A stretch of DNA of 64,000 bases from Lepidodermella squamata. Its lineage: Eukaryota > Animalia > Gastrotricha. The notes beneath the pieces were generated by a model. It saw nothing but the letters and a program-made list of their open reading frames with translations, did no database searches and was not told the origin of the DNA. Shown piece after piece: positions 7,370-49,734 of the stretch. The position numbers and the translations under genes are program-made. How positions within the stretch are numbered: the stretch's first letter is position 1; every line of letters begins with the position of its first letter. The stretch lies in assembly GCA_047495785.1 (NCBI GenBank), contig JBLDXI010000050.1:186001-250000 (forward strand). The letters run 5' to 3'.

Positions 7370-9688
7370 ATGTGTCAGCGAGATTACGAAGAATTTATCC
7401 AGAATCCAAGTTGCACATTCAACAACAACATGCTGCAAATGCAAGTTTTTCTAATTTTACTCATTGCTACAACGATAGCAGCTTATCAGAACAAAACGAA
7501 GCTGTTATTGCTGAATTTTCAGCCTTATATCGGTATGGACCCTAGCACAGCCGCATCAACGGCTCTCACCAGTCAGTTTATCGTCGACATAGCTAACAGC
7601 CGAAGTGATATTCTACCCGAATACGACGTCGAACTCATTTCTTACGATGAAGTTCGAGGGACTTTCACTCCGAAACAGGTCTTTGATTTCTTGCGATATG
7701 AAGCTTCACCAAACGAAGTGAAGGCTCCTATCATGGTTGGCCCTGCATTTTCAACCGGTTGCAAGGCCGTTTCGCCGTTCCTACAGCAAATCAACATGAT
7801 CGCCTGGAGCAATTTATGCGCAGCAATGTCTTTCGATGATCGTAAAGCGAATCCATTGCTCCATATCTCGGTTACAACATCGCGACTCGCCCTGCTTTCA
7901 ATCGCGGTTTTCATCAAAAAAATTGGGAAGTGGCGAGATTATGGAATTGTAACAAACTCAGCGAATGTAAACGATTACACACTTGCTTATCTGCTCTATG
8001 AAAAATCTGCCCAACTCGGCTTGACGATGCCATATTTCAACATTTTGAATAACGAAGTCACGTCAGAAGACATTCAAACGCTAAAGAAGAGCGGGCTACG
8101 CGTCATAGCAATATCGATATCAACACCGCCATTGGTGAACCAGTTTTTATGTGAAGCCCATAGAGCTGGTCTAACTGGCCCTAGGTATGTCTTCTTCTTT
8201 CAGATGGGTGGCTTCGCACCAACGTCGCCAAGCTCGTGTTCGCAGCGAGTTATTTTGGAACTAATGAGCAATTCGTTTATTGTTGGCCCTGTGGATCTTG
8301 GCGAGACCCGAAGGCCTAGCGATCTAGGAATCGACTCTCAAGCTCTTTACAGTGTGATTAAACGTAATTTGGGCTCGTTACCTCAAAATATGATATTTCC
8401 CCACATGGAGCATGACGCGGTTACTGGCGTTATTCTAGCTCTCAATCGAACTGACGATAGGCTGAGACGTAATTTCGGCATCAGCTTGATCGACTACGAT
8501 AAATTCCCGGAATTGGTTGCTAGCCAAGCCCATCGAGCTTTATTAGAGTCGGATTATTACGGACTTACAGGTCGAAAAACTTTCAGCCCCGAGGGACATT
8601 TCCAAGGTGACCCAATGGGGTTGAATGCCTTCAACACGAAACTCGGAATCTATCCTGTGATTCGCGGGGTTCAACTCAAACCAGGCAGCTTTGAAGTAAA
8701 CGAATTTGACGTCGAGCCTTTACGAGCAATCAATTGGCCGCTTGGCTCGCCCCCAAAAGATCGGGCAACTCTCCACCTAATCATCGAGGAAACTTCCCTA
8801 GCTACTCAAACCACAATATACATATTGGCTGTTGGGCTTTCGATCGTCGAAATCCTGGCTGTATTCCTCCTCAAAGGCCGATTTCAAATTTCGAACATTG
8901 CCGGAACTTGCGGCTGCGTTATGATAAATGCTTCAGCATGTTTAGGCGTAAGCGAGGATGTTCCATTTATTTCTTCAATATTCCTTGCTATAATTGGTGG
9001 ATCGTTGACGTTCGCGACTACAACCTCTCGGCTTCACCTAATCCAGCGTCACATTCGAGGTCAAATCGAGGCATATTACGCTGGGCTGTTTCAAAAAATG
9101 GCTCTGGATCACAACATAGGCGGTCTATCTCCAGCTAGCAAATATATCGGCAGTTTAACTCATGCTTCGATCGGGGTTTCATCGAGCGCTTGGAAAAGCA
9201 TTGGCCGCAAAACAGCTCTGGCTACGGGATTCTGCTTCTTTTGGATGACTTCCCTATCTATCACATGGATTTGCATACAGAGCTTCGTATGCGCTCTCGA
9301 ACTAAACAGCGAGCCATTTTACGATGAAATCAAGGATGAAATTGTCGAAAACAAGTCGATCTACTGCCGCGAATCTGGCCCTGCATCCTGGGGCTTGCTC
9401 GGAATCATTGGTGCAGCGATTTTCCTGATGCTATTCAGCTCTTTGCTGCCAACTTATCAACTGAGCCACGTGAAGGGGCTGGACGAGCTGAAGCCGCTGT
9501 ATATCGGGGCCTGTGCCTCAATGACCTTGTATCCGGCTCTGATTTTGATTGCAGTCCTAACAATGGGACAGCCAGTGACTGAGAGAACTGCGGTTTCTTT
9601 CGGCTTGCTGATCATTTCTGGCGTGAGTTCTGTCGGTTGGCATTTGCGATGGAAAGCAAAGTTGAGACTGCGTCGATCAACAAAATAA
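7370..9688 (+). CDS. Intronless class C GPCR-like protein (Venus-flytrap/ANF-receptor domain + 7TM, GABA-B-like architecture)
   Basis: Signal peptide (start probably ~7430-7440), IANSRSDILPEYDVEL and VGPAFSTGC motifs, YYGLTGRKTF, WPLGSPPKD, no Cys-rich domain, seven hydrophobic segments and a short C-tail. Confidence 0.85.
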   Translation: MCQRDYEEFIQNPSCTFNNNMLQMQVFLILLIATTIAAYQNKTKLLLLNFQPYIGMDPSTAASTALTSQFIVDIANSRSDILPEYDVELISYDEVRGTFTPKQVFDFLRYEASPNEVKAPIMVGPAFSTGCKAVSPFLQQINMIAWSNLCAAMSFDDRKANPLLHISVTTSRLALLSIAVFIKKIGKWRDYGIVTNSANVNDYTLAYLLYEKSAQLGLTMPYFNILNNEVTSEDIQTLKKSGLRVIAISISTPPLVNQFLCEAHRAGLTGPRYVFFFQMGGFAPTSPSSCSQRVILELMSNSFIVGPVDLGETRRPSDLGIDSQALYSVIKRNLGSLPQNMIFPHMEHDAVTGVILALNRTDDRLRRNFGISLIDYDKFPELVASQAHRALLESDYYGLTGRKTFSPEGHFQGDPMGLNAFNTKLGIYPVIRGVQLKPGSFEVNEFDVEPLRAINWPLGSPPKDRATLHLIIEETSLATQTTIYILAVGLSIVEILAVFLLKGRFQISNIAGTCGCVMINASACLGVSEDVPFISSIFLAIIGGSLTFATTTSRLHLIQRHIRGQIEAYYAGLFQKMALDHNIGGLSPASKYIGSLTHASIGVSSSAWKSIGRKTALATGFCFFWMTSLSITWICIQSFVCALELNSEPFYDEIKDEIVENKSIYCRESGPASWGLLGIIGAAIFLMLFSSLLPTYQLSHVKGLDELKPLYIGACASMTLYPALILIAVLTMGQPVTERTAVSFGLLIISGVSSVGWHLRWKAKLRLRRSTK

Positions 9689-13340: not shown

Positions 13341-16223
13341 TCAGGCTTGTGTTATCAAGCTTATACATAGTACAGTTAAATCCATGGCTAAACCAACACC
13401 GGAATTCGCAGTTGATGAAGCTTTCTTATTGTCAGTTGGCTCAACTTTCGATGGCGGGGCAGTTTTTATCGATTTAGACCCTGATGTTGGGCCATCCATT
13501 CGCAATAAGCTAACCTGGCCCAATCGAGACACTGCCATCTGGTTGAAGAGCTGTACCGACTTATCTTTGATGACTTGCAGAGCAATAGTAACTTTCGCGG
13601 CGATTTCCTCCTCCGTCAGCTGTGTCAAGCTGCGAAGCGCCACAATGTAATCAGCAATAATACTGCCCTTCCTAAAGCCGATAATTCGAACGTCAGACGC
13701 TGAGCCTTTGAATTCAACAGCAGTCCGATTCATCAATTCAATGATGCCGGGCAGCATGTAGTTTGCCAAGGCTGTGAATGTCTCAGAATTTGGGTTATTC
13801 AACTCAGGGTCCCAAGGATCAGTTATTATGACACGTTGACGCCCAGGAATCGTTATATTTTCACCTTTAATACTGAAATTCATGACCAACTCGTATCGAA
13901 AAGGCAGGGAAGGAAATGGGTCCGGAGTCGTACGCGGACCTTCTGTTGTAACCGCGCACTTTGAATTCGTTGTGCTGTTGTAGACTTTGATCTGATTGAG
14001 GTAAAATGGCAGCATAGATGGTGATAAACTGAATGGCAAAGCAGCTAAAATGCCGAATCTTATTGGTTGCTGAATGCAATTGAAGTCGTTCAAAGTATGC
14101 TGCGAAGCAATCGCAGCTTTCTCACTGCTTTCGCAAGATATCGCGATGGAATTCCCGACTTTTTCTACCGATATTACGTCCACATCACATGGCAATACGC
14201 TCGAGTTTGAAATCAAGCTTTCAGAAAGCTGGGATGGTTGAACCGAGGCGTAAACTTCCAGCCGTCTCGAGGCAATATACAGCACGATCGATAATCCGAT
14301 GAAGTTAGTGCCGTCCACATTGATCGGGGTATTTTTGTAGTCTCCAACGTCGAGATTAGCTGTAGCCTTATCGGCGACAAAGTAGAAGCTCAGGGCGCCA
14401 CCTCTTGGTTGAACTGACACTTGGAAATCGACTCGCCAATCATTCGCAGCGTTGAGTGTCTGATTTCAAGATAAATTTGATGAAATAAAAAGTTTCAGAT
14501 AAACACTGCTCACTGATGACGACCAAACAGCTCCTCTTTGACCGACGTAGGCGAGCCGGGCAGTCATTCCGCTCTCGGTTATAGCTGCTGCGCCTCTCAG
14601 GTAGTGTAAGTCTGAAATTGATTGGATATGTTGAAATTTATCAAGGTTTATAGAACAAACGAAGATTTGCAATGTTGACAGACTTTATCGGGTCGTACTG
14701 CCACGATATCTCAGGGAATGGCCGTGTTGCAGCCAATGGAGATGATATAGCTTGATGAAAAAAATTGAAGCTTAACAAAATGAAAAAGCCTAATTACTTA
14801 TTTCTAATTTTTAAGAGATAAATTAAAAAAAATGTGTAGAAATTTTTTTATTAATTATAATTTGTTAGTCAAATTTGCATTCAGCTGAATAACTTATACT
14901 TACTTTTAATGCAATGCTTGTACAATATTTCGGCCGTATTCATCTCCATGTATGCTTTATCAAATAGCATTAAACAAGCAACGCGAGCATCTGGGCTTCC
15001 CACTTCATTGGGCGATCTTGGGAACAAAAACAGGAAATTTCAAATGTCCGAGATCAACAGAATCTGAACATCTTGTTACTGGGGTTAACTTGGAAAAAAT
15101 TAACAATTAACAAAAAAAGAAACCTTCTTCCGACGTAGAAAGTCGCAGGGTAATTTCTGTTGAAGGACCACGAAGAGCCGGTGGTAAAGTTGACAGTCGT
15201 TATCGTTCCGCCAACAACGTTTGCGACGCGCTGATTGGCGTTTTCGCACGCAAGCAGCAAGAATGTCCAAGCCTCAGGATCCACAAGGTCCACAGTGAAA
15301 CTGTCGCTAGAGCCATAAATAGCCAGTTTTTTACCACTGCTTGTATCATATCGTACAGCTACGGTTACTCCGTTAGAATTTCCAGCATTGTCGATAGTAA
15401 CCAGCCAACCAGCCTTTGAAACTTTGAACATGAAACCGAGAGTGAAAGACCGCGGTCCATCGTCGAGTTTATGTAAGGCTTCTAGGTAATCACCCTTATT
15501 GCCACTTAGTCTGAAACCAGTTTGAGTAGAATTTCCACTCGGTTTCTCAACCTCCAAAGTCCCCTGCATTTGAAACGACGGCGTCGTTGGAACTAGCGAT
15601 GCAAGATTTGCTTCGTTGGTGAGAGGCCAAAACGCCTTCAACGTAGATGGGCTAGTACTCAGAGGCTGGCCACACGTAAGCGTAAGAGCTCCGCCTGGGA
15701 ACCACTTCCCATTAAGGCAGCTAAGGTCCAAGTAGAATCCATTCGCGCAAATCGGCCGTAGAACTGTATTCGATGGTTTCATATCAGTCGTAGCGGGAAA
15801 CGGGTCATTCCAGATTCCTAATGCCGAGCTGTTGAGTAGTCCTATAGCGTTATTCGCATCTCCCCCTTTGCATGACGCAGCTGTTGTCCCTGCTATCCAT
15901 TGAATAGAATGGCGAGAGAACTATCAAAAAATAAACTAACCAAAGCTGTTACAGGTTTCAACAGGCATAGACCAAACGCCGTCACTCAGGCATTTGATGG
16001 TAATCGAGTTCTTTGTTGAGGTGCAGTTCAGCATCACCTCATTGCCAACTGAGAAAGTTCGATTTCTTGATGTATCAAAGGTGTCAAAATCAAATCGTAT
16101 TGCCATGCTATAGAATCCATTTAGATTACTATCGCTTGACGCGTTCCATTTACATAACTCGATCGGGGCTGTTTTGGAGGCAAGCGAAACGATTGTTAAC
16201 AAAAACAGTACAAGGCGATTCAT
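13341..16223 (-). CDS. Sushi-LamG-L-lectin-mucin-SEA GPI-type surface protein, copy 2 (six exons, apparently intact)
   Basis: Exons ~15941-16223, 15124-15892, 14904-15016, ~14661-14750, ~14515-14611 and 13341-~14459 splice in frame at GT-AG sites. Signal peptide, CCP-like C..C.xGxW..C modules, RLAYVGQRGAVW...DWRVDF lectin-like strand pattern, FRKGSIIADY and hydrophobic C-terminus. Confidence 0.78.
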
Positions 16224-20218: not shown

Positions 20219-20527
20219 TATCCTACTTCTCCATATAACTGTTTCCTGGTTATGGGTTACTGGTTTTGGGAAAACAAATTAGATATTCGGAATCAGCGCA
20301 AAAATTGGGGTGCATGTTTGCGCACGGTTATCGTGAAAAATGGAGAAGAAATGGGAATGTAAAGAAATTAACTTGTGCGAGCGTAAGAAAGCGCGCGTGC
20401 ACGTATCAGCTACACACGGCTTCCCCGCTCATGCGCGTGGGACTGCTTGGTCCACGAGAGTCTTCTCATCAAGCAGACGAAGATCGCAGTGAGCCTCAAC
20501 GTGCAGTCTGACTCAATTAAATTAAAG

Positions 20528-21050
20528 CTATTTTGACAGTTTACATCCTGATGCCTTGTTGGGCTTTCGTTCTTTACTGCATTCATTCTTGTTGTGTTTT
20601 CTTTTGCTGTAGCCTGAAGATGGTCCGCGCAAGGACCGAAACGTCGACAACAGGTAATTCAAGACCTCGAGAAATCTAGTTTTCTGAAAGAACAGGCCCC
20701 ATGCAGCTCTCAGCGGCAGTGAATAGCCACGAGTCCACGGTGATTTTCGCGCCAGCTTCAATTAAAAGCCGGGCAATCTCAACACTAGTAACTATCAGAC
20801 GCAGCTCTTTGTAAAAAAGGTGTCGCCATCCCGCCGAGAAACAGCGCTGATGTGCGCGCCATTTTCGATCAAAACGCGAAGGGTGGCGACGTCCAAGTCC
20901 ATACCCATCAAGGGGATAGTGAGAGGTTCTTCCCCGCATAAGACATTGATGTTAGCGCATTTTGCTATTAGCAATAGCTTCGCTAGCTTACTTCGCTCAC
21001 ATTGGGATTCTCAGGGCAATAACAAATAGCTCGTTCGTTGCGTTTTGTCA
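20528..21050 (-). pseudogene. Degenerate ankyrin-repeat gene fragment
   Basis: Ankyrin-like segments in shifting frames: LAKLLLIAKCANINV, LRVLIENGAHISAV and VEIARLLIEAGAKI. Confidence 0.55.
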
Positions 21051-22251
21051 CGGCATCAGCTGGTAGATTTAGCGATAGGATGTACAATGCGGCCTCGATA
21101 AATGCAAAGGGTCGGGAGACAGGCGTTTGCATTTACGGAATGCTGCAGTTAGAGAGGGCTGTTAAAGAGCTAGCGATGAATCACAAGTGCGAAGTTTTTT
21201 CTTAGTTGCTAAGGCGACGATGATTTAAGGGGGAAAACTTTGTTCATCCGACCAATGTCTTATTTCATTCGACAACCAAAAATGTGACAGAAACCAGCCG
21301 ACTTGTTTTTTGATATTTTCAAAAAATTACATTAAAAAATGGACTACTTCATTGATTTCAATGGGCAGGGTGCGATCTTCGATGCCCGCGTGCGCACGAT
21401 ATAATTTGTCATTCGCAATCTCAATGAGCTTAAATAAAAAACGACGGTCTGTAAAGATCTAGAGGTTGGGTGTTCGGTGAGATAACACCGCGCGACCGGC
21501 AAATTAAAAAGCTATAAATCCGCTGCAGCGCTGTAATGTTGTTGCTAATGACGCCTGTTTTCACCGTAAATAAAAATTGTCAAACTAAAATTGTTATTTT
21601 AATGAAAATAATTTTTCAACAAATAAAACGAACGGAAGACAAAATCGCTTGGAAATACGGAGGTTTTCCAAGATTCATCACTAATTTTTTACTCTCATTA
21701 TCAATCTACTATTTTAGGTCTTTTACCTTTTAAATCGACTCGATGAAGGAGATTGCAAATTTGGCGCAAATAACACGCTGGCACGTGCGAAATTTTTTTT
21801 CAAAGATTTTGGCGGCGCGTGCCTCTTTTCTTCAATTAACATGACTTTTTATGAGCACTATAGATAACAAAATACTGGAGATATGACACTCACGATCTAG
21901 CCCTGTTATCTGAAAATAAAATCACGCGACCTTTGGACCCTATACAATGCGATTGCATTGCGAAAACTTCGACCAGAAGAAGCCAGAGTAGAATGTGCGT
22001 GTGCGTTAGTTCATTCCAACACTAAACAAACAAAAAACGTTTTATCTTGCTGTTACAAGTTCTTTACAAGTAATTGCAAGTTATCTTATGTCTTATCATT
22101 TATAATCCCGCTGTGAATTTAGAAACCTTAGCTGGGAACATAAAATCCCGCAAAGCTTACTGTTTCGCCTCTCCTTTCTTTTACCCTCGGTCACTCAAGT
22201 GATAAAAACTTCCTTTTTGTTTTCGTTTTCGTCTTGATCTGTACAACGATC

Positions 22252-23553
22252 ATGGGAACGACCTTTTCCTTTATGGAGGCGGAGAAAAAAACATGGACAG
22301 AACACACCTTATACTACGATCACGGCGTTCGGAGAACTAATTTGGCTCTGCTCTCCCACTTCAAGGATGGGGAGAGAATTTATTTGACCTATAACGAAAG
22401 CAGTTGGGGCGGTCTTCAATACCAGCACTGGTTCATAACAAATGGAGAATGCTTTTTTGAATTCGGTGGTCAGAACTTGGATATTTATCACGCAAGAGTA
22501 GCAATCAACACTAATCGTCGCTCAGGATTTCCAACCACCACCTCAAAGGTCATGGATGATGAAATGCGGCAAAGGATGAAATTAGTGTTAGGTATGAGTA
22601 ATTACTCCTTATGCTTGCGAAACTGCGAGCACGTCGCTAACTTCGTGTTCCGTGGGAGCTGGACTAGCATGCAACTAATTGATTCGGGATATTTGATTTC
22701 CTTCTTTCGCGACGTGTTGCTGTCAGAAAAAGCAATTACACTTGTTAACAGCTTTCCTTCGTCTATCAAACCCCATGTTTTTGATAGTGAAAGTAACAAA
22801 GCATATAGCTTCATTACTGATTCACTTAAAGCTACGCAATTCAGTTATTATCTTGACTTCAATGAGGAAACATATAACATCTTGGTTATTGGTCCCACAG
22901 GAAGCGGTAAATCCCGCGTGATAAATGTCCTTTTCAACCAGGAGATTTGCCAAAGTGACACTAGACACAAAAGTGTAACTCGAGACTGTTATTTTATACG
23001 TGGAGAAGGAACAGTTTTCAACAGAATCAAAGGAAGAAAGGAGATGACGCCTATTGTTGTAGCTGATACGATCGGGCTTTGCGATACCGAATGGAGTGAC
23101 GAAGCCACAGTAAGCAAGATACGCAGTCGTGTGGATTCAAACTGGCGGTATCTCGACGCAGTAATGATTGTTTACAGGGCTGGGCGACTGGAAAAACCGC
23201 ATGTGAAAAGCTTGAAAGCTATTCTTGATTGGCTTGGCTACCATGAAGGGAACAATCATTTGAGATTTCTTTTTGTCGGGACCCACGGTGAACATCTTAC
23301 GGAAGAAAAGCAATCGGAATTGCGGAAAGAAGCTATAGAAATGTTGGGTTTGCGTAGAACTATGAGACAACTGAAAAGTATCGGCCAGTTAGAATCATTG
23401 GTGTATGTTGGGTTTCCACCGGAGGATTCACTTAATGAAAAAGGCATCGCGAAAGTAAAAGAGAGTTGGGAATGGTTGCGGCAAATAGTCTTACGGAATT
23501 GGAACGCGGAACGTTTGGACATTTCTGGATCAAGAGGATGCAACATTCTTTAA
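22252..23553 (+). CDS. LRAT/H-rev107 (permuted NlpC/P60) domain fused to AIG1/GIMAP-like GTPase; N-myristoylation and C-terminal CaaX motifs
   Basis: First ATG at 22252 (MGTTFS); YQHW...NYSLCLRNCEHVANF; GPTGSGKS (G1), SVT (G2), DTIG (G3), THGE (G4-like); ends in CNIL; intronless. Confidence 0.85.
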   Translation: MGTTFSFMEAEKKTWTEHTLYYDHGVRRTNLALLSHFKDGERIYLTYNESSWGGLQYQHWFITNGECFFEFGGQNLDIYHARVAINTNRRSGFPTTTSKVMDDEMRQRMKLVLGMSNYSLCLRNCEHVANFVFRGSWTSMQLIDSGYLISFFRDVLLSEKAITLVNSFPSSIKPHVFDSESNKAYSFITDSLKATQFSYYLDFNEETYNILVIGPTGSGKSRVINVLFNQEICQSDTRHKSVTRDCYFIRGEGTVFNRIKGRKEMTPIVVADTIGLCDTEWSDEATVSKIRSRVDSNWRYLDAVMIVYRAGRLEKPHVKSLKAILDWLGYHEGNNHLRFLFVGTHGEHLTEEKQSELRKEAIEMLGLRRTMRQLKSIGQLESLVYVGFPPEDSLNEKGIAKVKESWEWLRQIVLRNWNAERLDISGSRGCNIL

Positions 23554-23784
23554 GAATCCATACATAATGCTAAAAGCTGAAAATACCTACAACATAAACT
23601 AAAATTGTTCCTTCGAAGCTATATTGCTATATAGATTGCTTACATACACTACATATACATTATAGCACATTTCCAGGTCCGCCGAAGTTTCCTCCAAGCG
23701 CGAATCCTGATCGGTCCGCCAGTATTCAGAACCGATTGAATATTTGGTCGGATTCGATGAATTTTATTTTTGTATCAGAACCGC

Positions 23785-23938
23785 CAGTGTGCGAAGTACA
23801 GGAGTGCTGGGGTGTCGCGACACCCCAGCTTCGGGACTCCAAACAGAGGAAGGCTGAAAAAACCACGGGGGATCCCGTTGGTTTCTTCGGCTGGGAACTA
23901 GAAAACACCTCAGCTCGCGGATCGTTTTTCGCACACTG
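23785..23938. mobile_element. hAT-like MITE
   Basis: TIR CAGTGTGCGAA...TTCGCACACTG with 8-bp TSD AGAACCGC/AGTACCGC. Confidence 0.85.
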
Positions 23939-26049
23939 AGTACCGCAGGAAAATTCGAAAGTTAGTCTTCGTAATAGCCGCGCGCGGTATTTCACTACGA
24001 TTGGCTGGCATCAACTTTTGGGGTGATTACCGTTTGCGCGACTTATTTTGCGCGACGCGATCTGCTGGACTATTACATGGAGCGCATGCAAGATTCGTGT
24101 CGCGCAAAATCAAGTTTACTCTGGGTCGCGCAAATAGAGTCGCGCAGATGGGAGCCGTCTCAACTTTTGCGCGCGCAATTCCGCAAGTCCCAACAATTAT
24201 TCAATAAATTATAACTTCTAATCTAATATAATCGACAGTTATTTATATTGGAATGTTGGAATTTGAATGGGAATAGTTTTTACCGCTCTGTTCCATCTGC
24301 TGTAAGGATTGAGGATAAATTGAATTGCAGAAAATTGCGGGGTTTAATCGAGATTTTGCTTACTGGCCTTTATGGGCCTTTGTAAGCGCTCCTAAATGTG
24401 TTGCGCAATTGCTCGAAAAACGCCAGCCAATAAGAGCGCAATAAGAGCCAATGAAGAAACTAAGGCGGGCATGTTACCAGTCAAATTCAAATAATAGTTT
24501 ATTCCAGTAATTAATGACCAATACACCCCTCCACGAAGTCATGCTTGAAATTGGCCTGTCGATTATTCTTTTGTATTCGGTACAAAAACAAAATGGTTTT
24601 CAGAAATATTGATTGTGTTGTCAAATCAATTACATGTTCATCAATTACAGCTTTGAATGAAATAATAAAGAATAAGTAATTAGTTTCATCATTTACTCAA
24701 GTTCTAAGGGTTATTGTTATTGTTATCCAAATCGTCATAGCAGCGATTCAATGTGTTATCCGGATCGTATCGTAAAATATGACTTCTTAATGGCCGAATT
24801 ATAAACTCATAAAACTTTCTTACAAGCAGGGAATTTTTGTTATTTTCTAAACAAGCGGCGATTTTTTGATATGTTTATATCAAAAATGCCCACTAGTCTG
24901 GAAAATATCACCAAAAACCCCACTTGTCAAGCACTCAGAATAAAACCCAAAAAAGTTAAAGAAACACTCCTAAAACGATTTTATTAAGAATCACAAAAAT
25001 TGGGTGAAAATTGGGCAGCATTATGGGAGAAATAGCACACGACAGGTATCGAATCAGGCAGAATCACCCCAATCGAACAGCACTTAGTGCTCGGAAAAAT
25101 CGGGCAGAAAAATTGCAGGAATTCGCGAGAACTATGTCGCGGAGATCAAGAAACAATCGGCCAGATTTCGATGAAATCCGAGAGATCTCGGGCAGCATTT
25201 GATCCCAAGAATCGCAGCACGGCATCGCTTGCGTCTTGCGACATTGAAAGCTAGACGATACAGCGAATCGAGCGAAGTAGGCAATTCGATCAAGTCTCGT
25301 TGGGGCATTTGTGTCCATGCGTTAAAACGGCCCTGGGTCTAATATATAATTTATCTTATTAGAGGTAATTTCCTATAAAATTCTTGCCTACAAACAAGCT
25401 CGTACACCCGTGAGCGCGCAACATTCATCGGAAACAGGGGCACCTCTCCATACTCCCAATTAGGCTGATTTTGCGTAGTGTTGAATCGTTTGGCAATGTA
25501 TGTCCACAGGGTGCTGCTGCCTACTTGAGATATATCCGATCACGTGACGTTTAATTTCGAGATTCTGGCCACGTTGAAACCAGCTAATTAAGATTTGTAC
25601 TGTACCTTGTCTGAAGATTGCAAATCGCTTCAGGTCAGAGATTTTAGCATGGGCATTCATTTTAAAAGGCTTCTACTGGCATTATTTCTTTCACAAATGC
25701 CTATGCAGCGAAGCCGAGGCTACTGTGGCCCGGAATGACGCAGAAGCTCAACGTACCAGACCCCAGTCCTACAGCTATGATAGACTACGTCAACATGCTG
25801 GTATGCTGGCTGGCAGGCTGGCGATGAGTTATGTTCATTAATGTCGTCCGCAATTTTAACATCGACAAAGAATCTAACCACAATCGCCATTCGGAGGTTC
25901 CTTCGTTCCTCTAGCGCTGCTGCAGCAGCTGCTGTTGCCGATAAAAGGAAACCGCCGTCCATTTTCAGTTTTCAGCGATAGCAAAACCATCGCTCCTAAT
26001 TTCTAAATCTTGAGTATTTGCATAAAAAGTGATTAATTTCTTCACTGTT

Positions 26050-28119: not shown

Positions 28120-29290
28120 TCGGTATATTATTTGTAATAATTATTATAATTATTATATTGTTATTAGTATTATTTGTGTGTGATGACCTCACCCTACCTC
28201 GCAGGTCCCGGGGACAACTGGTCACCCAGAATCAGCCTCTGCTTACGCGAAGGTTGCGCTAGCCCAGGCTGACAACACAACCTTCGCTGAAGGAGGCATT
28301 TTAGCCCGCTCGGCAGAAACTGACCCTGCATTCCACGCGCCGGGCCCCAGAGAGCGAGTGAAGCCATACCATTTTTTTTTATAATTATTTTTCGAGCTTG
28401 AGTGATTATTCTTTTCGATCGTGTTTGTGAATGCAGTGGCGTAGTAGCGTAGTAGTATATACAAAAAAAAGGTTGGCACAGTAAAGAGAAAAAGCAGTAT
28501 ACAGCAAATTGTGGCATTTAAGTCATAAAATTAAGCATAGCAAAACAGATATAGCAGTAGTATAATACAATGAAATTATAGGTGAACATGAAGGTTATGA
28601 GTGGCAGTATTGTCGTAATTCGCATGTCAGTATTCAGTATGTATTTTGTAAATAAGGCGATCGCCAACGATAGTTTTGAGTAATATTCGCGTCATACATT
28701 TTTCTAACTTGTATTTACAAAATGTATTTACAACATGCATCAAATAATTCGCGTTCTCTTCTGTACTCAAGCTTCTAGTCGCGAGCGAATGACATCGAGT
28801 GGAGTGATAATAGATATTCTGGATGGTAAGAGAGGCTGATGTTGTAGTAAATTGCGAGCGTCAATACCCGCGTCGGTCCCCACTCGAATGGCTCGATTAA
28901 TCGTTTTGACTGTTCGTTCGATGATGCGTGCTCGAAACATGTCGATTCTGGCGTCACTGTGCAGTTGCTCTGTGCCGTAAAGCCTAGGTTTTCTCAAACA
29001 TATTTTTAGAGCTTGGTTTTGAGTGCGCTGCAAAATTTTCATGTTGTCATCAGACATGCCGATGTAGGATTCGCAGCCGTGTTCCATAGCCGATCTGATG
29101 GTGGCTTTAAAGACCGTCAGGGCTTGCCTTGTGGCCATGTTTATTCTATTGCTACACAGTCGGCGCAAACAGGTAATTCTGCCCGACACCTTATCCTGTA
29201 ATTTTTGAACATGACTGTTAAAATTTAGTTTTTTATCGAATGTTACACCAAGATAGGTTATTTCCGGGAGCCAGGGCAGCACATTACCGT
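28120..29290 (-). mobile_element. 5'-truncated non-LTR retrotransposon (LINE): RT C-terminal ORF 28767-29282, 3'UTR and (AAT)n-like tail
   Basis: YLGVTFDKKLNFNSHV and LQRTQNQALKICL motifs; AT-rich simple repeat at ~28124-28175; abuts the truncated surface-protein gene. Confidence 0.8.
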
Positions 29291-43849: not shown

Positions 43850-46581
43850 TTACCATAATGAAATAACAAGAACAACATTCGTTAAGAAGAAGCTTGCAAC
43901 TATCGCATTTGCATTTGATTTTTTAGCGTTTTTTGTGTCTGCTCCAGTTCCAGATACTTCCGTATCGATTTTACCACCTGGCGATGCGGTAGCTGCTACT
44001 TCAGTTGGGGAGGCATTCATTTTCAGCAAATTCACTTGCCCAAGTCTGTTTGAGCTTAGTCCAGTAAGAAGCTCGACAGCCTTTCTCTTCAATACATCCA
44101 CTGCCTCTGAAATTTTAGCCGCGATTTGATCCTCAGTCAATTGCGTCAGACTCCTCAGGGCCACGATATAGTCTGCTATGATGCTGCCCTTTCTGAACTT
44201 CAGAATTTGGACGCTCAGGATTGTTCCGTTCGTCGATGAAATGACGAGTTTTTCAATTGCTGGTGTCACGTACTGGGCAAGGGCATTGAAGGTGCCCGAA
44301 TTGGGGTCATCCAAAGCTTTATCCCATGGTTCTGACGAGACAACAAGATTCGACCCTGGAATTGTCAAATTCTCCCCAATTATGCTCATATTCATCAGTA
44401 ACTGATAGGAATAAGTCGCAGCTACGGTCGGCACTTGAGTTGAAGTCGTAGTCGTTGGGCCGTTTGTAGTTGAGGAGTTCGAATTCGAATAGAACTTGAC
44501 CTGATACAGGTAAGGGGCTCTTCGATACCCTGGGATGTCTCTAAGAAAATTCGCTCCAACGCCGTAGCGTAGATTCCCGCTTATGTCATGGAAATTCGGG
44601 ATATCTTTCGAGAAAACCGGATATACAGTTCCGTTGGCTTGACAGTAGATACGAAATGAAGTTCCTGCTTTCTCAATTGTCAGAATCTCCGCAGCATTCG
44701 GAAAGGCACATCCTCTAACATTTTCCGCTGTTATTTGAGTAGTCGAAAAGTTGCTAGGTGTTGATGCGGCTGATAGGGTGAAACTTCCGAGATTCATTCG
44801 CCAAATGACAACAAGGCCAGATATTTGGGACCAGTTTACATTGTACGCGTTCTCAGTTTTATCGACCGCTTGGTCAACATTGACACTAATTTGGTCGGCT
44901 AGCATGTAGAAATCAAGATCGCCCGTATGGGAATCTGCTGTCACGTGATACTCGATGTGCCAGTCGATTTTAGGCGAAAAAGTCTGGAAATGAGAGATGG
45001 AAATTCGAAAGCAGCTTATTTTTGAACTTGTTTTCCTGTTTCGATTTCCCCCAATTTTTATTTATTTACCTGTGAACTCCAAACACTGCCGTATTTCCCG
45101 AATGTAGCAAGCCGTATTGTCATACCATTTTCCGTTATCACTGCGGAACCTCTCACGTACTGTGTATCTAACATTAAAAACGAAACCTAAAATAGTGTGA
45201 TTTTAATTAAAGAACTTACAGAAATTTGCGATGTTTATTGAAAGGGATTCATCGTACGTCCATGGAACATTCGTGGAAGCTTTGACAATCGATTGAATGG
45301 CTGGAAAAAAATTAGGTAAAATGAGCTTTTCAATAAACTGCTTACTTCTCAAGCAGTGCTCATAGCAAACCGAAACATGATCTTGTCGATAGAATGCCGT
45401 ATTGAAATATTTGAGACAGCCGAGTTTGCCTTCAAAACCTGTGTCATTGCTTTGAAAAATACTTATAGCTGGGAATGTGAACTGGATTAGAAGTCCTTAC
45501 CTTTTCCCGACGATAAGGCTTAACTGCTGGTCGTTGGGTAAGGCCCAATTTTGTTTTGTTTTAATAGTGACCAAACCAGCTCCACCTCCTACCATTATGA
45601 CGTTGATACTCGTGTTGTTGATACAGGAGACGAGGACAAAAGTCCACTGATGTGGGACGTTGATTTTTACATTGGCTTGAAATGCCTCTGAACCACGCAA
45701 TAAGGTGATTTTCTGCTGTGTCGCGTCGTAGGACATCGTGATGTCAGGACCATTAGGTGTGTCGATCGTCCAAACCTGGCCAGATAAATCAGGCTTCATG
45801 AAAATACCAAGACTCCATTGCTGGCTGCCCTGTCCGGGAAGATTCCTTGCCACGACTTGCGAGTCATTTCGGAAGTAGTAGGTATTCAGGTTTTCCAGAG
45901 TATCGACTACAACCTCGAGGCTACTGATTCCGCTGTTCAGCGGCCTGAGATTGGTAGTGCTGGACATCGGCCAGAATGCCAGTAGATTCGAAGGCCCAGC
46001 ACCACCGCTACGGTCTCTGCAGCTGAAACTGGTCAAATCCGATATAAATTTGCCATTTAGGCAGGTTGTTTGTCGATAGACCCCTGAGTTGCACATCACC
46101 CTGATCACAGTATAGTTAGGATAGTCGATATCAGGTAACTTGGCTTGACCAGGCTGCCACGATACTTCTGAATCGTTACTCACGAAGAATTGGTCACCAG
46201 GAATCGTCCAACCAGTGATTCTACAGCTTTTCAGCTGGGATTCCGGATTTTCTAAAAATTTCAATTTTATGTCACAATTAATTCGTAAATCAAAACCAGC
46301 TCACGAAGATCAGAACAGCTGGGGACTGGATTTGACCAGTAGCCATTATCGAGGCATTTGATAGATGTCATATTCGTGGGGAAGGAGCAATTCAGCTCCA
46401 TTGTCACCCCGACCTCGAACCGCGTGGACTGTTTCGATGGGTGAACTTTTTGCACTGCGAGAAAGTCGAAGCCGTATTTTACCGTCATCGCATCCTTTGT
46501 TCCGCTCCAAGGGCATTGTTCTATTGCAAAAATGCTGGAGAAACACATTAAAAAATGCAACCCAACCCTTAGGACAATCAT
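43850..46581 (-). CDS. Sushi-LamG-L-lectin-mucin-SEA GPI-type surface protein, copy 5 (apparently intact)
   Basis: Same six-exon layout; VGK-SNDTGFEGKLGCLKYF LamG end; RLATFGKYGSVW lectin strand; FRKGSIIADY; hydrophobic tail. Confidence 0.78.
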
Positions 46582-46907: not shown

Positions 46908-49734
46908 TTAGAATAACAAAGCAATCATAGCAATCATTAGGATACTGAGAGAGTTCGTTTTAAGCATGTTCGCGTTATCAGAGATTTTGCCCAAGTCAAG
47001 CTGTCCTTTGTAAAATTTGCCAGCAGCTGTGGCTGTCTCGACAGAACGATCCATTTTCACCAGATTCACCTGTCCAAGCCGGCGGAGACTGATTCCTGAT
47101 AGAAACTCGCCAACTTTTGTCTTCATTTGATTCACAACCACTGAAACTTTATCCGCGATTTGATCCTCAGTCAGTTGGGTCAGACTCCTCAGGGCAATGA
47201 TGTAGTCAGCGATAATACTACCCTTCCTGAATTTTACTATTTTAACGCTGAGAACTGTTCCGTTCATCGTTTGGGCTGTTGAAATCATAAGATTTTCGAT
47301 TGCTGGTATCATAAACTGAGCTAGTGCTTTGAATGTCTCTGAATCGGGGTCATTTAACGATTTATCCCATGGTTCTGTCGAAATTACTGAATTGCGGCTG
47401 GGGATTGTGACATTCTCCCCTGTTATACTGATATTCATCAGCAACTGGTAGGAATAGCTCGTCGATGCTTGCAAGTTCCCAATTGAAGTTTTTGTCGTTG
47501 TCCCTAACATAGACGGCTTCGCAATTACAGCTGGTTTGGTTGTAGAATCCTTCGCGTAAGAGTAAAACTTGGCTTGCATCAGATAAGCTGGGCTTTTGAA
47601 TAATTCGGTGTCCTGAAGGTAATACGCACCAATGCCATATCGTAGATTTTCAGAAATATTTTGAAAATTGGGTATATCTTCCTGGAAAACCAGCTTCATA
47701 TCGCCGTAGCCTTGACAATATATTTGGAACTTCGTTCCTATCTTTTCGATAACCAAACCGGTAACATACGCTGGATAAGCACATTCTGGCATGACCTGAG
47801 ACTTGAGTTGAATATTCGAAATATAATCAGGGGTAGTTGAGACTGATAGGGTGATATTTCCAATCTTCAAGCTCCACGTGACAACTAGCCCGGTGATACG
47901 AGACCATTTTATGTTGTACATGTTCTCAGGGGGTTCGGTTTTATCCATTTGGACACTCGTATGATCAGCCACTACGTAGAAATCAAGCCGACCCATATCG
48001 GTCGCTGCTCCAATGTAGAACTGGATGTTCCAGTCCATTTTTGGTTTGAAAGTCTGTTATAAAAGTAGCATTGAAGTAAGAAAAAATCAAGATCCCCAGC
48101 TAAGTTTAATGCTAAGGCTAGTCTAGGGGTTTTGGCTCACGGTTTCACGAACCAGCAATCTTAACTCTATCCGGAATCCCGGGCCATCATATGAAATTTG
48201 TATGAACTAATTACTTGTGAATTCCAAACAGTGCCGTATTGCCCGACTGAGGCGATTCGTATTGACAATCCATTTTCCGTTATGACAGCTGGACCTCTCA
48301 GGTACTGTTTATCTAGCATTGCAAAATAGAACGTTTTAAAACAGCAGGCGAAGATAACAGACAAATTCTACCAAAGTTTGCGACGCTCATCGAAAATAAG
48401 TCATCGTAAGTCCAAGGGAGCCGCGAATTCGCACTGGTTAAAAACGAAGGATTTCTGATGGCTGCGGAAAGATTCCGAGATAGGAAATTAATACTAGTAA
48501 AGTTAACTCACTTGCAAGACATTGTTGGTAGTAGATCTGAGAAGGGTTGGACGGGAGATAGCTCACACTGAAATATTGGAGGCAAGCAACGCGTCCCTCG
48601 AATCCATTATTAGGGCCAGAGTCCGCCCTGAAACAAGTGAAATCTGCCATGTTAATGTTCCTTTGATAGTCCTTACTTTTTGCCGACTATGAGGCGTATT
48701 GGCTGCTCGGTGGGTGGGGACCAGTTCTCCACGGTTTGAACAGCCACTGCCCCAACTACACCACCCGTCATTGCAACATACATACTTGAATTACTAACAC
48801 AGGACACAATGAGATGGGTCCATTTCTGAGGCTGAGTTATGTTGATGCTAACAGGCAATATCTCCGAGCCACGCAAAAGTACAATTTGCTGCAATTTTGC
48901 ATCATACGCAGCACTCGTATCAACAAGATTGTTAGAGCTCAGAGTCCAGATCAACCCGGATGAGTTGAAACTGATCAAAATACCTATGCTCCACTGTTGG
49001 CTACCCTGCAAATTCGTTGCAATTAGGCTCGAGTCCTTTTTCAAGTAGTAAGGACCTCTTGCAGGGTGATCCAAGCCGTTACCTCCGACCTTCATGTTGT
49101 TGATTCCAAGAGTAAGCGGTCCAAGGTATGTATCACTTGTCGATTGCCCACCTCCGCCTGTCCGTTCGTTGCAGTTAAAATTGTTCAAATCCGGTATAAA
49201 TTTGCCATTTAAACAGGTTGTTTGTCGATAGGCCCCTGAGTTGCACATCGCCCTGATCACAGTATAGTTTGGATAGTCGATATCGGGTAACTTGGCTTGA
49301 CCAGGCTGCCACGTTGTCTCAGAATCGTTACTGACGAAGAATTGGTCACCAGGGAGCGTAACCACATTGATCCTGCAGCTATTTATTTGATTTTCAGAAA
49401 TATCTAAAAAAATATCGAAGATTTAGGTGGATACGTTTTATCATTCTTCTAGCTCACGGAATTCAGCACAACGCGAGATTTGTTTAGACCAATAACCATT
49501 GTCCAGGCATTTTATCGACGTGAAATTTGAGGAGCAATTCAGCTCTAAGATTTGACCAACTTTGAACCACATATATTGCTTTGCCGGGATTGAGAGAGAT
49601 TGAGTAAGGAAGTTAAAGCCGTAGTTCAATGTCATAAAGTTCCCATCAGTGGTTCCGTTCCATCGGCAATCTTCAGCGGCGACGAGGAAGACGCGGCCGA
49701 GAAAAGTCCACGAAACAATGAATGGTAGTAGCAT
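46908..49734 (-). CDS. Sushi-LamG-L-lectin-mucin-SEA surface protein, copy 6 (in frame; lacks the NLKAYWPL strand)
   Basis: The exons checked splice in frame; in-frame deletion at the start of the LamG-like domain relative to copies 7 and 8. Confidence 0.75.

Follow-up and report, generated by a model that had tools for sequence, protein, structure and literature searches.

The PLAAT/HRASLS and LRAT enzymes (PF04970; for example PLAAT4, 7zot, and HRASLS2, 4dpz) are membrane-tethered proteins with a circularly permuted NlpC/P60 fold, in which an H-box histidine precedes an NCEH motif whose cysteine lies at the start of a helix. The GIMAP proteins (for example GIMAP7, 3zjc, and GIMAP2, 2xtn) and Toc34/33 carry an AIG1-type G domain with an arginine in a conserved box, dimerize through the G interface and are anchored at the C-terminus. 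The action of GIMAP/AIG1 GTPases on membranes is still unclear, and the control of PLAAT-type enzymes is, to our knowledge, not fully understood. Here we describe a gene in which these two kinds of domain are joined in a single polypeptide. The gene lies at 22252-23553 on the forward strand of a 64,000-nucleotide stretch of the genome of the gastrotrich Lepidodermella squamata (GCA_047495785.1, contig JBLDXI010000050.1, positions 186,001 to 250,000). This whole stretch is hereafter called the window, and coordinates refer to it; all features of the gene are on its forward strand.

The open reading frame (ORF) runs through 433 codons, without a stop or frameshift, from the ATG at 22252 to the TAA at 23551-23553. 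Upstream of this ATG there is an in-frame stop and no earlier in-frame ATG. A bacterial-style gene call had proposed a TTG start at 22234, which we rejected as an artefact: no in-frame ATG precedes that at 22252, where the homologues also begin, with MG. In a word search the protein retrieved 52 homologues with E-values down to 3e-181, so the homology is far beyond chance, and the complete intronless coding sequence (22252-23553; 433 residues plus TAA) is colinear with these 52. From end to end, the protein carries MGTTFSF at its N-terminus, YQH59W, FFE70FGG, N124-C-E-H127, GPTGSGKS (214-221), T243, DTIG (272-275), THGE (344-347), and CNIL at its C-terminus. A first-pass annotation of the window had described an intact intronless frame with a set of such motifs and read it as an LRAT/PLAAT-like domain fused to an AIG1/GIMAP GTPase. 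All of the motifs that it listed are found in the sequence where it placed them, and Pfam, profile and fold searches agree on the fusion, which is kept across the family. The ORF is a real, intact animal gene joining a PLAAT/LRAT-type lipid-enzyme domain to a GTPase of the immune, GIMAP/Toc34-like type.

By profile comparison and structural modelling, the N-terminal half of the protein belongs to the LRAT/PLAAT (H-box/NC) type of circularly permuted NlpC/P60 domain, with its core at residues ~40-158 (22369-22725). We make this assignment because several weak-to-moderate lines agree, and not because of one strong match. In the 47-sequence family alignment, on which all conservation counts given here as x/47 are based, 37/47 N-domains match Pfam LRAT at E <= 0.1, the best with E 5.5e-7. 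Two N-domains exceed the gathering score, namely those of P0026 from Adineta ricciae (27.1 bits) and of P0035 (30.3 bits), proteins with an overall identity to the window protein of 41% and 37%, respectively. The family profile of the N-domain matches HRASLS2, PLAAT4 and picornavirus 2A in the PDB, and hhalign pairs it with a PF04970 protein at a probability of 97.9%. We also compared a model of the N-domain (predicted local distance difference test, pLDDT, 87) with ~48,000 PDB representatives using VIA-align. A subunit of the Euglena respiratory supercomplex (Z 7.3) came ahead of Aichivirus 2A (Z 6.3); DUF862 deSUMOylase (Z 6.0) and PLAAT4 (Z 5.8; root-mean-square deviation 3.0 over 88 residues) were also matched, with YiiX, TseH and CLN5 (Z 4.6) at lower ranks. 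The neighbours listed below the Euglena subunit are all permuted papain-like NlpC/P60 folds. An ESM Atlas search with the N-domain returned a cluster of its own family first (TM 0.74), and rows 2-6 were all PF04970 clusters. The first-pass annotation had named as one of its risks that the N-domain might not have an NlpC/P60 fold; fold and profile searches both point to the permuted form of that fold. A profile search with the N-domain retrieves almost only members of the fusion family or their fragments, and for this reason the LRAT subfamily to which it belongs appears to be tied to the GTPase domain.

The domain differs from PLAAT/LRAT in its surroundings. There are ~40 family-specific residues before the core, and after the catalytic domain, in place of a C-terminal transmembrane helix, come a linker, the GTPase domain and predicted lipidation signals. 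The H-box/NC proteins of picornaviruses (Aichivirus 2A, 7zv6; parechovirus 2A, 7zu3; Ljungan virus 2A2, 7zua) are the best or near-best structural and profile matches, with motifs that align over residues 56-136. They differ, however, in being viral, single-domain and devoid of a GTPase or lipidation signals.

The candidate catalytic residues follow one another in the order His...Cys, the permuted arrangement, with the same order and spacing as in PLAAT/HRASLS and LRAT. His59 (YQHW; 22426-22428), the predicted catalytic histidine of the H-box, and the NC motif N124-C125-E126-H127 (22621-22632), with Cys125 as the predicted nucleophile, align with 7zua and with the NCEH of HRASLS2 (4dpz). In a hidden Markov model alignment to Ljungan virus 2A2, H59 falls on the H-box histidine, NCE on NCE, and Glu70 (22459-22461) on the second histidine. 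The second histidine of the Cys-His-His triad found in PLAAT/LRAT is therefore absent, with a glutamate in its place. The first-pass annotation had suspected this substitution from the sequence FFEFGG; Glu70 aligns exactly at that position, and it is a trait of the whole family (44/47). Elsewhere in the NlpC/P60 superfamily the third catalytic residue can be acidic or polar. In the model, helix 125-134 begins with Cys125, and H59 and E70 lie on neighbouring strands, a placement that is predicted to be papain-like. We therefore propose a triad of Cys125, His59 and Glu70 as a prediction from the motifs. Conservation is complete for N124 and E126 (47/47 each) and nearly so for H127 (46/47) and H59 (44/47), while Cys125 is kept in 36/47, with Ser in 9, Ala in 1 and Gly in 1.

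The remainder of the protein (residues ~205-415; 22864-23496) is assigned by Pfam, PDB sequence matches and Foldseek to an AIG1/GIMAP/Toc34-type GTPase domain with C-terminal helices. Pfam AIG1 (PF04548) covers residues 209-353 with E 4.2e-11 and a score of 43 bits, well above the gathering score of 27, and the best PDB sequence matches of the protein are GIMAP7 (E 2e-6) and then GIMAP4. The full-length AlphaFold2 model, built from the 47-sequence alignment, has a pLDDT of 87.1 and a predicted template modelling score of 0.78. With this model as the query, the first 33 Foldseek matches are without exception Toc34/Toc33 or GIMAP1/2/4/5/7, at E-values from 1.8e-9 to ~1e-6 and with Toc34 (1.8e-9) and GIMAP7 (5.8e-9) as the top scores. 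The G1 P-loop GPTGSGKS (22891-22914; G219 and K220 each 47/47), G2 (T243) and the G3 motif DTIG (23065-23076; D272 47/47, G275 46/47) are intact and are invariant or nearly so in the family. G4 is a variant, THGE (23281-23292). Across the family this site reads NKxD, the canonical form, in protist members and T-x-x-[DE] in animal-type members, and position 347 is D in 32/47 and E in 13/47. A PADLOC scan gave a generic GTPase match only (mad8, E 4.6e-6) and was uninformative on function.

Arg312 (23185-23187), in the conserved box of the AIG1 domain (YRAGR) and kept in 46/47, is a candidate arginine finger acting in trans. In a PDB sequence alignment, AVMIVYRAGR312 is paired with AIVLVLQLGR of GIMAP7 (3zjc). 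This PDB entry is an L100Q variant with the glutamine at index 105, so that the aligned arginine is residue 103, which we take to be the catalytic arginine finger of GIMAP7. GIMAP7 provides an arginine finger through dimerization (PMC8066113). We modelled two copies of residues 190-433 together with GTP and Mg, and the predicted G-domain homodimer reached an ipSAE of 0.61 against 0.02 for the best control; in calibration, 0.61 was reached by 21/30 solved homodimers and by 0/23 solved monomers. The runs shared at least 86% of their contacts, with a partner pLDDT of 78 or more. The predicted interface is symmetric and is made up of residues 216-217 of the P-loop, 237-241 of switch I, 277-279 of switch II, 310-316 of the conserved box and 347-349 of the G4 region, and R312 contacts residues 216-217 in the P-loop of the partner copy. 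The G domain is thus predicted to homodimerize with Arg312 reaching the partner P-loop, as in GIMAP7 and Toc34. The domain resembles GIMAP and Toc proteins in its AIG1-type G domain, its conserved-box arginine, its predicted G-interface dimer and its predicted C-terminal anchoring, but differs from them in its THGE motif, in a CaaL box that stands where they have a transmembrane helix, and in the enzyme domain fused to its N-terminus. The fusion family is separate from the vertebrate GIMAPs, with which it shares 15-21% identity.

Lipidation motifs had been proposed at both ends of the protein, and as sequence signals both are present in the window copy and conserved in the family. The N-terminal MGTTFSF (22252-22272) is a predicted N-myristoylation signal that fits the consensus M-G-{EDRKHPFYW}-x-x-[STAGCN]-{P}. 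This consensus is fitted by 30/47 members, and the exceptions are mostly truncated gene calls or paralogues from the same genome. The C-terminal CNIL (23539-23550) is a CaaL box, predicted to direct geranylgeranylation; 45/47 members have Cys at -4, and Leu is the last residue in 39. Among the ten copies of the gene in the L. squamata genome, two begin with MGxxx[SA] and two are without such a signal. In four others (L006, L007, L008 and L009) a strongly hydrophobic N-terminal helix replaces the myristoylation signal, with a 19-residue Kyte-Doolittle mean of 2.1-2.5 for L006, L008 and L009, and with an N-terminus in L007 that is identical to that of L006. L005 has a weaker hydrophobic N-terminal stretch (Kyte-Doolittle 1.0), and the CaaX box is lost in L004 and L010. 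The exchange of one kind of N-terminal anchor signal for another among paralogues suggests that anchoring of the N-terminal, LRAT-side end is itself under selection. Both ends of the window protein are predicted to be seated in the membrane, through an N-terminal myristoyl and a C-terminal geranylgeranyl group.

Based on these data, we propose that the gene is functional and encodes a two-domain peripheral membrane protein that acts as a GTP- and dimerization-gated membrane lipid enzyme, a reading to which we assign a probability of roughly 0.55. In this model, GTP binding would drive dimerization or oligomerization of the protein on a target membrane, with the G domains pairing across their nucleotide-binding faces and Arg312 inserting into the partner P-loop. 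Pairing of the G domains would then position or activate the LRAT-like domains, which may hydrolyze or transfer phospholipid acyl chains in the manner of PLAAT and so remodel or damage the membrane locally. GTP hydrolysis by way of the arginine finger would reset the system. By analogy with PLAAT enzymes and with GTPases of the GIMAP and GBP kinds, a role in defence or organelle turnover is plausible. A functional parallel, with no claim of homology, is offered by GBP1/2/5, which are CaaX-anchored GTPases with nucleotide-driven assembly on membranes, but which belong to the dynamin-like GTPase class and have no fused lipid enzyme. The suggestion of a GTP-regulated membrane-remodelling or defence effector, made at first pass, is compatible with all of the data and is our leading hypothesis as well. 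A bolder and more tentative version is that the protein is a doubly lipid-anchored, single-chain, GTPase-gated phospholipase. In response to GTP, its G domains would dimerize on a target membrane (pathogen, vacuole or organelle) and thereby turn on a Cys-His-Glu enzyme of the PLAAT kind, through which this membrane would be breached; the protein would represent an ancient eukaryotic effector found from dinoflagellates to animals. We regard this as possible, though clearly short of an even chance.

Several observations weigh against a gated lipid enzyme. The window copy itself scores 17.0-18.9 bits against Pfam LRAT, below the cut-off of 24.3, the structural Z-scores of 5.8-7.3 fall in the "middling" range of the alignment tool, and no PDB structure was matched by the N-domain in Foldseek at E <= 0.001, with picornavirus 2A making up 5 of the top 10. 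In the GTPase domain, G4 reads THGE and not NKxD, which leaves guanine specificity a prediction only. The dimer prediction may reflect memory of solved GIMAP/Toc34 dimers, and speaks of likeness and not of binding. The sequencing run that bears on transcription (X1, below) is RNA only by a guess in its record. Lastly, the picornavirus 2A H/NC proteins have the same fold, and the NC motif may serve something other than cysteine catalysis, because Cys125 is replaced in 11/47 members while the flanking N124 and E126 are invariant.

The last two points lead to the alternative that survives best, namely that the N-domain is catalytically silent or at least non-lipolytic, a lipid- or membrane-binding or regulatory module, and that the whole protein is a lipid-anchored GIMAP-like scaffold or switch. 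The picornavirus 2A H/NC proteins, which are among the best structural neighbours of the N-domain, have been argued to be non-lipolytic binding or regulatory modules of this kind. One paralogue, L010 (G000:C24:1292535-1293716), keeps an open frame despite NSEH for NCEH and a degenerate P-loop (GPPGIGKF); it also has Gln for His59 and lacks a CaaX box, and we take it to be a pseudo-enzyme or a decaying copy. However, the full Cys-His-Glu set is present in the window copy and in 35 other members, H59 and E70 are each kept in 44/47, and 9 of the 11 replacements of Cys125 are serine, which is still capable of acting as a nucleophile. We therefore consider a silent N-domain doubtful.

A second alternative keeps the catalysis and changes the substrate: the N-domain could be a cysteine peptidase, isopeptidase or thioesterase (of the PPPDE/DeSI, CLN5 or classical NlpC/P60 kind) acting on proteins or protein-lipid thioesters and not on phospholipids. 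DUF862 deSUMOylase, CLN5, YiiX and TseH, all found by VIA-align, have the same permuted papain-like fold, and two members give weak matches to Peptidase_C97 (PPPDE). Against these 2/47 stand the 37/47 members that match LRAT. Moreover, the NCEH motif and the spacing of the H-box are as in PLAAT and 2A, and the Atlas neighbours are LRAT clusters. On this evidence a peptidase or thioesterase seems unlikely.

The genome (121 Mb in 151 contigs) holds ten intact copies of the gene, all intronless, and the closest paralogue of the window copy is 48% identical to it. The window protein is closest to two metagenomic proteins, with which it shares 65% and 61% identity (BLASTP: 64% and 59%); in both comparisons the synonymous divergence (dS) is saturated. 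Purifying selection is seen in two paralogue pairs, with a ratio of nonsynonymous to synonymous divergence (dN/dS) of 0.019 for L006/L007 (dS 0.24) and 0.108 for L008/L009. These four genes lie collinearly, two on each of contigs C25 and C26 at distances of 201.7 kb and 177.7 kb, and dS is ~0.2 between counterparts, which suggests that C25 and C26 represent either divergent haplotypes or homeologous regions. No counterpart of this kind exists for the window copy, which lies on C50. Unlike these pairs, a tandem pair 16.5 kb apart, L003/L004 (G000:C28:1030723-1048616), has a dN/dS of 0.94 at a dS of 0.13, which points to relaxed or diversifying selection.

Assembled reads from two sequencing runs (Logan contigs) bear on whether the window copy is transcribed. 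Contigs from X1, the presumed RNA run, span 22239-24547 with 0 differences, while the unique flanks at 20300-20667, 21404-21587, 21956-22139 and 25452-25800 are at zero; X2, a DNA run at ~45x, covers the gene and its flanks throughout. The X1 pattern is suggestive of a transcript of ~2.3 kb with a 1-kb stretch downstream of the stop codon (23554-24547), possibly a long 3' untranslated region or read-through, and the window gene is probably transcribed. In X1 contig 2, the 30 letters upstream of 22239 have no match to the genome. A splice acceptor was sought at 22239 and no AG adjoins it; possible sources of this junction are a spliced leader or upstream exon, a difference between strains and an error of assembly.

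The first-pass annotation had placed the gene among relics of transposable elements (TEs) and had suggested mobilization or retroposition. The first part is weakly true. A dispersed repeat of ~160 bp, SINE/MITE-like and outside the coding function, lies 3' of the stop codon at 23785-23940 (no strand assigned). Its candidate copies in the genome number at least 365, spread over many contigs, and the 40 that were scored have 80-90% identity. The repeat contains a short GC-rich palindrome (GGGGTGTCGCGACACCCC), occurs three times at 8,170 bp spacing on contig C7 and coincides with a depth spike in X2. Depth in X2 also rises to ~17,500 over a background of 45 at 21036-21403 and 24716-25083, indicating further high-copy short repeats that flank the gene. 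Five kb downstream, at 28767-29282 on the reverse strand, a relic ORF carries what is, as judged by eye, a typical C-terminal reverse-transcriptase motif of a non-LTR (long terminal repeat) element (YLGVTFDKKLNF...), that is, of a long interspersed nuclear element (LINE). The second part does not hold. Intronlessness is a family trait, because the ten paralogues, the closest metagenomic relatives and the A. ricciae gene are all intronless, and the neighbouring repeats are ordinary, independent insertions around an old resident gene. That the window copy is a retroposed or TE-mobilized, unexpressed relic with a frame still open is highly improbable: in favour of it are the lack of introns, the short dispersed repeats and LINE relic in the vicinity, and the merely presumed RNA nature of X1, but the locus shows no poly(A) remnant, flanking direct repeat or intron-bearing parent, the frame is intact with every motif kept despite the 48% identity to the nearest paralogue, related genes are equally intronless, and the X1 contigs lie on the gene and are absent from its unique flanks.

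The family reaches well beyond gastrotrichs. Named relatives among animals include the nematode Acrobeloides nanus, the springtail Folsomia candida, the sciarid flies Bradysia odoriphaga and B. coprophila, the bdelloid rotifer Adineta ricciae and the tardigrade Paramacrobiotus metropolitanus, and a further named relative comes from the dinoflagellate Pyrodinium bahamense. Others are MMETSP and EukProt transcripts, and the remainder are mostly metagenomic eukaryotic contigs; the protist members derive from transcriptome assemblies (MMETSP, Trinity). In a quick maximum likelihood tree, rooted on two dinoflagellate/protist-type rows (P. bahamense and a EukProt transcript), so that the basal position of protists follows from the choice of root, the animal-type sequences make up a crown of poor resolution, within which the ten copies from this genome fall into at least four lineages. 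The window copy clusters with the proteins P0001 and P0002 (SH-aLRT 100), and the ten copies are not placed specifically with the A. ricciae member. Synteny was uninformative, as no common neighbours were found between the window locus and contigs of the closest relatives (L013, L014 and L017). The B. coprophila gene is ~64 nt longer than its coding sequence, and the contiguous DNA does not translate to the protein, from which we infer a short intron of ~64 nt, in contrast to the intronless copies elsewhere. On NW_023503572.1 of this fly, two tandem copies (L023/L024) ~5.4 kb apart encode an identical product. The family is old and mostly intronless.

In databases the members are labelled only "AIG1-type G domain-containing protein" or "GTPase IMAP family member 4". 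A literature search retrieved no paper with AIG1 and LRAT in the relevant sense, nor one with NlpC and AIG1, and GIMAP and PLAAT appear together solely in gene lists from expression studies. The first-pass annotation had held that a broadly described fusion would remove the novelty; the distribution is indeed broad, but the literature search found no published description. The architecture is therefore undescribed in the searched literature, is made of two known kinds of domain, and belongs to a widespread, old family. A comparable case is given by the genome paper of the nematode Halicephalobus mephisto, which reports an expansion of AIG1-like genes in nematodes with a patchy distribution in invertebrates and fungi and proposes horizontal transfer from fungi (PMC6872716). 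The likeness lies in the AIG1-like GTPases and their patchy distribution; an LRAT domain is not mentioned in that paper (0 occurrences), and the only named nematode member of the fusion family is A. nanus.

Elsewhere in the window, three long ORFs on the reverse strand (13341-14417, 43850-44941 and 46908-48035; 358-375 residues) all encode a SEA domain (E 6e-8 to 1e-6) and constitute a local SEA-domain gene family. At 7370-9685 on the forward strand, a single-exon ORF of 772 residues carries an ANF_receptor ligand-binding domain. A word search with it found just one relative, a subunit of a GABA-B receptor from a coral (23% identity), which argues that the lineage of this animal is poorly sampled.

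A conserved natural fusion with anchoring signals at both ends and a conserved candidate arginine finger provides a testable hypothesis, namely that AIG1-type GTPases can gate a lipid-modifying activity. With 433 residues and no introns, the gene is expected to be easy to express. The patchy spread of the family over dinoflagellates, a nematode, a springtail, sciarid flies, a rotifer and a tardigrade bears on the question of gene loss versus transfer, and the evolution of membrane targeting can be approached through the ten copies of a single genome, some of which have a hydrophobic helix in place of a myristoylation signal. If the bolder reading of a GTPase-gated phospholipase is true, one polypeptide would combine roles that in vertebrates are split between GIMAP/GBP-type GTPases and PLAAT enzymes.

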